Part shown: one piece after another, positions 28,542 through 28,577 of the stretch
Numbering within the stretch: the stretch's first letter is position 1
Layout: each line of letters begins with the position of its first letter
DNA from: Octopus bimaculoides
Taxonomy: Eukaryota
Direction: 5' to 3'
Assembly: GCF_001194135.2 (NCBI RefSeq)
Contig: NC_068998.1
Span: forward strand, 9,018,483-9,082,482
Length of the DNA stretch: 64,000 nucleotides
Notes under the pieces: generated by a model
What the model was told of the DNA's origin: nothing
The model's input: the letters and a program-made list of their open reading frames with translations, nothing else
The model's database searches: none
Position numbers and translations under genes: made by a program

Positions 28542-28577
28542 TGTAATACTGTTTTTTTCTTTCTATTTCAGGTGAGT
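28542..28577 (+). promoter_or_regulatory. Candidate recursive splice site (ratchet point) 2: TGTAAT branch-like motif, pyrimidine tract, AG|GTGAGT
   Basis: tgtaatactg-tttttttctttctatttc-AG(28570-28571)|GTGAGT(28572-28577); 17 of the 18 nt before the AG are pyrimidines. Confidence 0.55.

Follow-up and report, generated by a model that had tools for sequence, protein, structure and literature searches.

Recursive splicing has been documented in Drosophila and in vertebrates (PMC8605326, PMC6110456, PMC10156609). The best described sites are the Drosophila ratchet points, for example those of Ubx, kuz and Bx (Hatton 1998, Burnette 2005, Duff 2015, Joseph 2018, Pai 2018; summarised in PMC8605326 and PMC6110457), for which the recursive-splice exon (RS-exon) model of Joseph et al. 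combines a ratchet point with an out-of-frame exon that is short and non-coding and a downstream donor of lesser strength (PMC8605326). A stronger rebuilt donor promotes skipping of the exon through donor competition in flies, and cryptic RS-exons show little conservation and lie out of frame (PMC8605326). RS-exons are also described in vertebrates (Sibley 2015, Blazquez 2018, Boehm 2018; summarised in PMC8605326 and PMC10156609). In the fly work of Pai et al. an RNA junction from the upstream 5' splice site to the ratchet site is direct evidence for recursive splicing (PMC6110457). Here we describe a pair of sites in a 64,000-nucleotide (nt) stretch of genomic DNA (the window), site 2 at 28542-28577 and its upstream twin, site 1, at 3329-3372, both on the + strand. 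Junctions in RNA contigs join one and the same upstream exon to both, and we consider them to be, probably, RS-exon-type recursive splice sites, partly expressed, within a long intron.

The two sites have the same construction, with a 3' splice-site consensus abutting a 5' splice-site consensus after a pyrimidine tract (CAG|GTGAGT at site 2, TAG|GTAAGT at site 1). Site 2 reads TGTAATACTGTTTTTTTCTTTCTATTTCAG|GTGAGT, with its junction at 28571|28572 and the sequence beginning at 28572 being GTGAGTTATATA; site 1 reads aatCTTAATCtg(T/C)27AG|GTAAGT, with AG|GTAAGT at 3365-3372 and the sequence beginning at 3367 being GTAAGTTACACC. The original prediction, made from the letters alone, had picked out TGTAAT, 17 pyrimidines of 18 and CAG|GTGAGT at site 2, strong pyrimidine tracts at both sites, and a distance of 25.2 kb from site 1 downstream to site 2. 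Reading the sequence gives the same elements, tracts of 17/18 and 27/27 pyrimidines, and a spacing between the two junctions of 25,205 nt. Counted over a fixed interval from -20 to -3, the pyrimidines of site 2 are 16/18. The component parts are as follows.

28542 to 28547, + strand: TGTAAT, branch-point-like, from a TRAY scan of the sequence; the candidate A at 28546 would lie 25 nt upstream of the G of the AG
28552 to 28569, + strand: polypyrimidine tract of site 2, 17/18 C or T
28570 to 28571, + strand: AG of the used 3' splice site (RNA contigs X28, X41)
28572 to 28577, + strand: GTGAGT donor consensus, reading GAG|GTGAGT after joining of the upstream exon (sequence and contigs)
3329 to 3335, + strand: CTTAATC, putatively branch-point-like; candidate A at 3333, 33 nt upstream of the G of the AG
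3338 to 3364, + strand: polypyrimidine tract of site 1, 27/27 C or T
3365 to 3372, + strand: AG|GTAAGT, the used acceptor 3366|3367 plus the abutting donor consensus (contigs X28, X14, X53)

RNA evidence was taken from sequencing runs coded by X-numbers, in which organism A is the species of the window and B and C are sister species. Contigs were assembled from overlapping 31-letter words, each of which was required to be present in the reads; they leave out rare reads and carry no local depth. A search with 28540-28900 found 0.83 of its words in X28, and also matched about 11 runs of species B. An organism A contig of 343 nt from X28 (depth 10) consists of 26 nt of foreign sequence, CAAAGTTCGACGAGAAAAAGTTAAAG, followed by 28570-28885, and a species B contig from X41 carries AAGTTAAAG, which is 9 nt from that exon, and continues with 28570-28809. 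These two contigs supply the RNA join between an upstream exon and 28572 that had been proposed as a check. At site 1, AGTTCGACGAGAAAAAGTTAAAG plus AG precedes 3365 in X28, X14 and X53 (23, 23 and 15 nt respectively, from three studies). The exon joined to both 28572 and 3367 is thus the same, ending ...CAAAGTTCGACGAGAAAAAGTTAAAGAG (also written ...GTTAAAGAG), and since AG is the ending of this exon as well as of both introns, the junctions are correctly placed as ...TTAAAGAG|GTGAGT and ...TTAAAGAG|GTAAGT. In X28 the site 2 junction and the sequence beyond it form a single unbranched contig, and RNA depth is 0 at 28130-28361 (four RNA runs) and 6-270 just downstream of site 2.

The window does not contain the sequence of the upstream exon, even with mismatches allowed, and across site 2 the organism A DNA contigs X1 and X4 run colinear with the window. 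The joins are therefore made in RNA, on the + strand, over at least 28.5 kb. Unless an assembly gap hides the exon, the window is internal to an intron of 28.5 kb or more in a gene read on the + strand. The two motifs are genuine acceptors, spliced to one and the same upstream exon, and for site 2 this is seen in two species. With microsatellites masked, A is below T on the + strand in all 8-kb bins (overall skew +0.073), which fits + strand transcription of the entire window as judged from base composition; the G/C skew is inconsistent. It is very improbable, in our estimate, that these junctions are artefacts, either chimeric contigs or products of a paralogous locus in which the upstream exon is physically adjacent. 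Such an origin draws on the evidence being contigs rather than single reads, from runs whose types are guessed and which possibly contain DNA. It is opposed by the requirement that every overlapping 31-letter word be present in reads although the two sides share only AG, by the recurrence of the junctions in 4 runs from 4 studies and 2 species, by joins falling in every case exactly at AG|GT boundaries, and by the colinearity of the DNA runs with the window at site 2.

In X28 another upstream sequence, 183 nt or longer (...CCTTCAGTTAGCATTTTATT, ending ...ATGCAAAAAACCTTCAGTTAGCATTTTATT) and likewise missing from the window, is found joined at 3366; it may be an alternative first or upstream exon. 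Of a total site 1 depth of 22 in that run, 9.7 comes from the first exon and 7.9 from the second.

An identical short sequence, visible over 9-26 nt, at two acceptors 25 kb apart is also what would be expected if the shared 5' sequence were a spliced leader or other trans-spliced RNA and not a neighbouring exon, although we give this explanation little more credence than an artefact. The contigs begin 28 and 25 nt upstream of the junctions, which from the way they are built would imply very few other partners sharing even 3-6 bases past the junction, in contrast to a leader carried by thousands of exons; the upstream exon would then have few continuations, namely its own intron starting GTAAG, site 1 and site 2. 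The site 1 acceptor also receives a different sequence (183 nt or more), both acceptors are on one strand in a window of uniform T>A skew, and a leader leaves the abutting GTRAGT unexplained. We know of no case of leader trans-splicing in molluscs.

The motif statistics depend on what is counted. The bare 8-mer AGGTRAGT occurs 3 times on both strands together, against 4.57 +/- 2.24 expected from dinucleotide shuffles, and its enrichment was rejected as an argument, the count being at chance. An exact scan agrees with the earlier reading by eye that sites 1 and 2 are the only such 8-mers on the + strand of the window. The accompanying claim that the minus strand holds no equivalent stands for the composite of tract, AG and GTRAGT, which occurs on the + strand only, and fails for the bare 8-mer: a AGGTAAGT is present on the - strand at 52393-52400, within a (TAGA/CAGG)n microsatellite and with 4/18 pyrimidines upstream. 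With this copy lacking a tract, the 8-mer by itself is uninformative in this genome. Only 1.3% of AG dinucleotides on the + strand have at least 16/18 pyrimidines upstream, and the composite is expected 0.007-0.02 times on the + strand and 0.003-0.01 times on the - strand; two are seen, both on the + strand (Poisson P for at least two ~2e-4 to 3e-5), and 0 of 1,200 Markov simulations placed two composites on one strand. That two sites on one strand beat chance, as had been argued, is thus true of the composite and not of the 8-mer. A chance motif without activity could appeal to the 8-mer being at or below its chance frequency; it is refuted by the junction contigs and the composite statistics, and we regard it as scarcely credible. 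The original prediction had named comparable minus-strand sites, or a lack of splicing at 28571/28572, as outcomes that would tell against it; neither was found, with the composite confined to the + strand and 28572 in use as an acceptor.

Sites 1 and 2 were also considered as copies of one repeat, and this was rejected: their flanks align locally with a score of 32 (shuffles, 25.3 +/- 2.7), and the alignment involves the T-tract only. The repeat scan placed both sites outside all of the repeat families shown. One further + strand position, 31493-31500, pairs a pyrimidine-rich tract with AG|GT and a fair donor (...cattcgtcacag|GTATGTTATCAC, 13/18 pyrimidines before AG|GT), and is the only one to do so; it is a weak third candidate.

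Joining of the upstream exon rebuilds GAG|GTRAGT at both junctions, with consensus matches of 7/9 (GAG|GTGAGT) and 8/9 (GAG|GTAAGT) and duplexes with the U1 5' end of -10.7 kcal/mol at site 1 and -10.8 kcal/mol at site 2. Each acceptor also opens an exon-like block that is present in RNA, and the blocks and the elements associated with them are as follows.

3367 to 3556, + strand: exon-like block of 190 nt, candidate RS-exon 1, with stops in all three frames (X14 3365-3530 and 3501-3558; X28 3366-3484; X53 3365-3501)
3557 to 3562, + strand: GTATGT after GAAG, the downstream donor of the site 1 exon (X14 depth drop)
28572 to 28885, + strand: exon-like block that may be an RS-exon or a terminal exon; each of the three frames has stops (X28 28570-28885; X18 28583-28866)
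28828 to 28833, + strand: AATAAA in an A-rich stretch, possible poly(A) signal; organism A coverage stops at ~28861-28885 and species B contigs pass it
28900, + strand: AAA|GTATGT, donor-like and the weaker of two (U1 duplex -4.2 kcal/mol)
28944 to 28949, + strand: GTAAGC after CAAG, donor-like (U1 duplex -9.5 kcal/mol)
3384 to 3395 and 28661 to 28672, + strand: 12-mer AGAATTGGAATG common to both blocks, its only two copies in the window

At 190 nt the site 1 block is not divisible by 3 and is thus frame-shifting. Its own donor pairs with U1 at -6.8 kcal/mol, weaker than the rebuilt donor, and appears to be used in X14, where depth at 3558 drops from ~49 to ~10 and a 33-nt contig (depth 32) departs from the genome after 3558, the genomic continuation having depth 10; X20, X54 and X52 cross this donor unspliced. 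The departing contig matches two bases (GT) beyond the exon end, which is suggestive only, being expected if the next acceptor also precedes GT, as at 28572. An exon starting with a donor consensus, detectable in RNA and with its own downstream donor is therefore found in full at site 1. At site 2 the block is covered further by X17 (28570-28623 at depth 272, 28600-28806 at depth 183) and X29 (28627-28813), and in species B by X30 (28571-28959) and X32 (to 28971), such that it ends at ~28861-28885 in organism A and at 28959-28971 in species B. Use of the donors at 28900 or 28944 is seen in no contig, and the species B contigs read through them. In both blocks one frame receives its stop from the junction itself, as AGG-TAA or AGG-TGA, and no catalogued proteins were found with the translations of either block. 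Hydrophobic tails of 30-33 amino acids, encoded in one frame, were considered as alternative membrane anchors and rejected as an effect of T-rich composition, the species B RNA having +5 and -4 nt indels in the site 2 block. The copies of AGAATTGGAATG lie 17 nt and 89 nt past the junctions, with a rough chance estimate of 0.3-1%, and may represent an exonic splicing element common to both blocks or be coincidental.

The species B RNA contigs X30, X32 and X41 differ at 28689 and 28694 and have indels at 28584-28586 and 28632, differences that the species B DNA contig X16 does not have; the label 'species B' may cover more than one lineage or population.

As the blocks persist in RNA, the sites are not zero-length ratchet points of the fly type. 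The cryptic exon of such points is always skipped, whereas here the blocks are found in RNA contigs at depths of 10-270, and the sites are better filed as partly expressed RS-exon-type sites than as silent zero-length ratchet points. The proposal of serial ratchet points in one intron accordingly survives in part: there is one long intron and both acceptors are used, but the points are not of zero length and open exon-like RNA blocks.

The main rival is that these are ordinary alternative exons without recursion, with 3367-3556 a poison or non-coding cassette, 28572-~28860 a terminal exon polyadenylated within the intron, and the leading GTRAGT never a donor, its non-use being coincidental or due to suppression after splicing. 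We regard this as a real possibility, if clearly the less probable one. The same persistence of the blocks at depths of 10-270 speaks for it, as do the apparent use of the donor 3556|3557 in X14, the AATAAA at 28828 followed by the end of organism A coverage at ~28861-28885, and the fact that most mammalian exons of such anatomy are expressed, not skipped (PMC8605326). It requires, however, that two exons of one intron should start with a consensus donor, which is very improbable by chance at an expected 0.007-0.02 composites per strand, and it sets aside rebuilt donors that are stronger than the sole downstream donor seen used. Polyadenylation at 28828 is opposed by the species B contigs, which pass the putative site to reach 28971, and by the A-run loose ends of X17, which fall in A-rich genomic sequence with 3 mismatches. 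By the published definition these would in any case still be RS-exons, and the rival differs just in how often the rebuilt donor wins.

We favour recursive splicing at both sites as the probable explanation. The upstream exon is joined to 3367 or 28572, each join rebuilding a strong donor, and the rebuilt donor would then remove the next intron segment along with the short non-coding RS-exon that helped to define the site. The long intron would leave in pieces, from the 5' splice site to 3366, from 3367 to 28571, and from 28572 to the next acceptor. If the weaker donor downstream prevails, or if cleavage of the RNA intervenes, the non-coding block would stay in the RNA; persisting non-coding blocks are what the contigs show, in agreement with this step. 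Both blocks are non-coding, that at site 1 is 190 nt, and neither has a catalogued protein, which matches the description of cryptic RS-exons (PMC8605326), and on our analysis the anatomy of both sites matches the RS-exon model. We infer the use of the rebuilt donors, and with it the removal of the intron in segments.

Several observations weigh against this explanation. A rebuilt donor in use is seen in no read or contig, the contigs dropping rare reads, and the junction from the upstream exon to 28572 could come from splicing directly past site 1. At depths of 10-270 the blocks are rather abundant, which also fits ordinary alternative or terminal exons, and that of site 2 ends near AATAAA in organism A. 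The junction evidence comprises assembled contigs, not single reads, and the run types ('RNA?', '?') are guesses, such that DNA may be present in the runs. The three deep raw-read RNA runs X24, X38 and X39 (each sampled at 6%) gave zero unique coverage at either site, with matches to microsatellites and to the short interspersed element (SINE) only, and expression is therefore restricted. Sister taxa B and C do keep the AG|GTGAGT core unaltered, with substitutions and small indels around it at 28552-3, 28559, 28583, 28585, 28588 and 28593, but this comparison spans just ~3-4% divergence and is too shallow to reveal constraint. Among these changes, species B has C>T at 28559, retaining a pyrimidine, and species C has T>G at 28552-3 and lacks 1 nt at 28559, leaving a tract of ~15 nt.

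Set beside the described systems, the sites resemble Drosophila ratchet points in their (Y)nNCAG|GTRAGT form, in a very long intron with more than one site, in junctions that link the site to the upstream 5' splice site and in the strong donor that is rebuilt, and at site 1 also in a weaker downstream donor defining a short, non-coding, out-of-frame RS-exon. They differ in that the fly cryptic exons are ~50 nt and essentially invisible in mRNA, whereas those here are 190 and ~300-400 nt and persist in RNA contigs. The Drosophila set is moreover defined by a sawtooth pattern and by a core that is deeply conserved, while the present sites are known from junction contigs and motif, and the organism here is not an insect. 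The resemblance to vertebrate RS-exons lies in first bases that are a donor consensus, so that joining the upstream exon rebuilds a 5' splice site, in expression that is often detectable, and in premature stops like those of poison exons. The vertebrate outcome is set by competition between rebuilt and downstream donors, and the same anatomy is present here; the vertebrate examples lie in annotated long neuronal genes, and the motif and RNA contigs here give no evidence of exon-junction-complex control. The m1 and m2 microexons of Ubx are likewise several recursive-type exons within a single long intron, all joined to one upstream exon and either included or skipped, but they are 51 nt, frame-preserving, coding and ultraconserved, whereas the present blocks are non-coding and long and differ by indels between sister species. 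Intronic polyadenylation and alternative terminal exons share with site 2 a used acceptor, non-coding sequence and an AATAAA with organism A coverage ending ~30-55 nt later; they leave unexplained the abutting donor consensus at two sites, and species B RNA passes the hexamer.

The window as a whole is draft eukaryotic DNA with a G+C content of ~34%, 22 assembly gaps (5,166 N) and a high density of microsatellites of the TA, CA, TC and ATGT types. Its repeats and base composition appear cephalopod-like. A search for open reading frames (ORFs) in the window gave no clean long ORF, a Pfam search with the ten best window ORFs gave just sub-threshold transposon scraps (a Mos1 helix-turn-helix and a reverse transcriptase), and an Rfam scan of the window gave zero families at the gathering score. 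Three ORFs of the window that were looked up are not recorded as called genes, and strings from the SINE turned up in none of the papers searched. There are ~11 copies of a short interspersed repeat family (~100 nt or more, 63-91% alike to the reference copy), and the many matches of the RNA runs to interspersed repeats make the region's RNA coverage look higher than it is. The near-perfect inverted repeat at 6894-7133 has 114-nt arms that are 97% complementary and spaced by 12 nt, and might be an element that folds back or forms a hairpin, or else an artefact of assembly. The top 'inverted repeats' of the repeat finder (13442-13669/59167-59394 and 10034-10218/61659-61843) were rejected, being actually runs of N in gaps. 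These other features are as follows.

4524 to 4620, 14082 to 14178, 35433 to 35529, 35615 to 35711 and 61204 to 61300: example copies of the short interspersed repeat
27889 to 28033: second repeat element, with an inverted copy at 36608 to 36752
6894 to 7007 and 7020 to 7133: arms of the inverted repeat
22483 to 22686, + strand: decayed helix-turn-helix of a Mos1-type transposase (Pfam E 1.5e-4, below cut-off)
29663 to 29845, - strand: decayed reverse-transcriptase fragment (Pfam E 3e-4, below cut-off)

A prediction made from sequence was thus borne out by public RNA data, in which two AG|GTRAGT sites lying 25 kb from each other share a single upstream exon, and the composite motif, unlike the bare 8-mer, should be usable as a genome-wide predictor in this organism. 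Among the papers searched none pairs recursive splicing with octopus, and recursive splicing was absent among the ten matches listed for cephalopods and molluscs. Cephalopod-like genomes have very long introns, and how these are accurately removed is a question. Should the organism be a cephalopod, that lineage would here have its first documented recursive splice sites. Whether the sites represent recursive splicing through AG|GTRAGT in long introns of a lophotrochozoan (apparently a cephalopod), and hence a mechanism that is either ancestral to bilaterians or repeatedly recruited with very long introns, and the first examples outside flies and vertebrates, seems to us evenly balanced. The locus lets stepwise intron removal and RS-exon competition be examined in a third major animal lineage.
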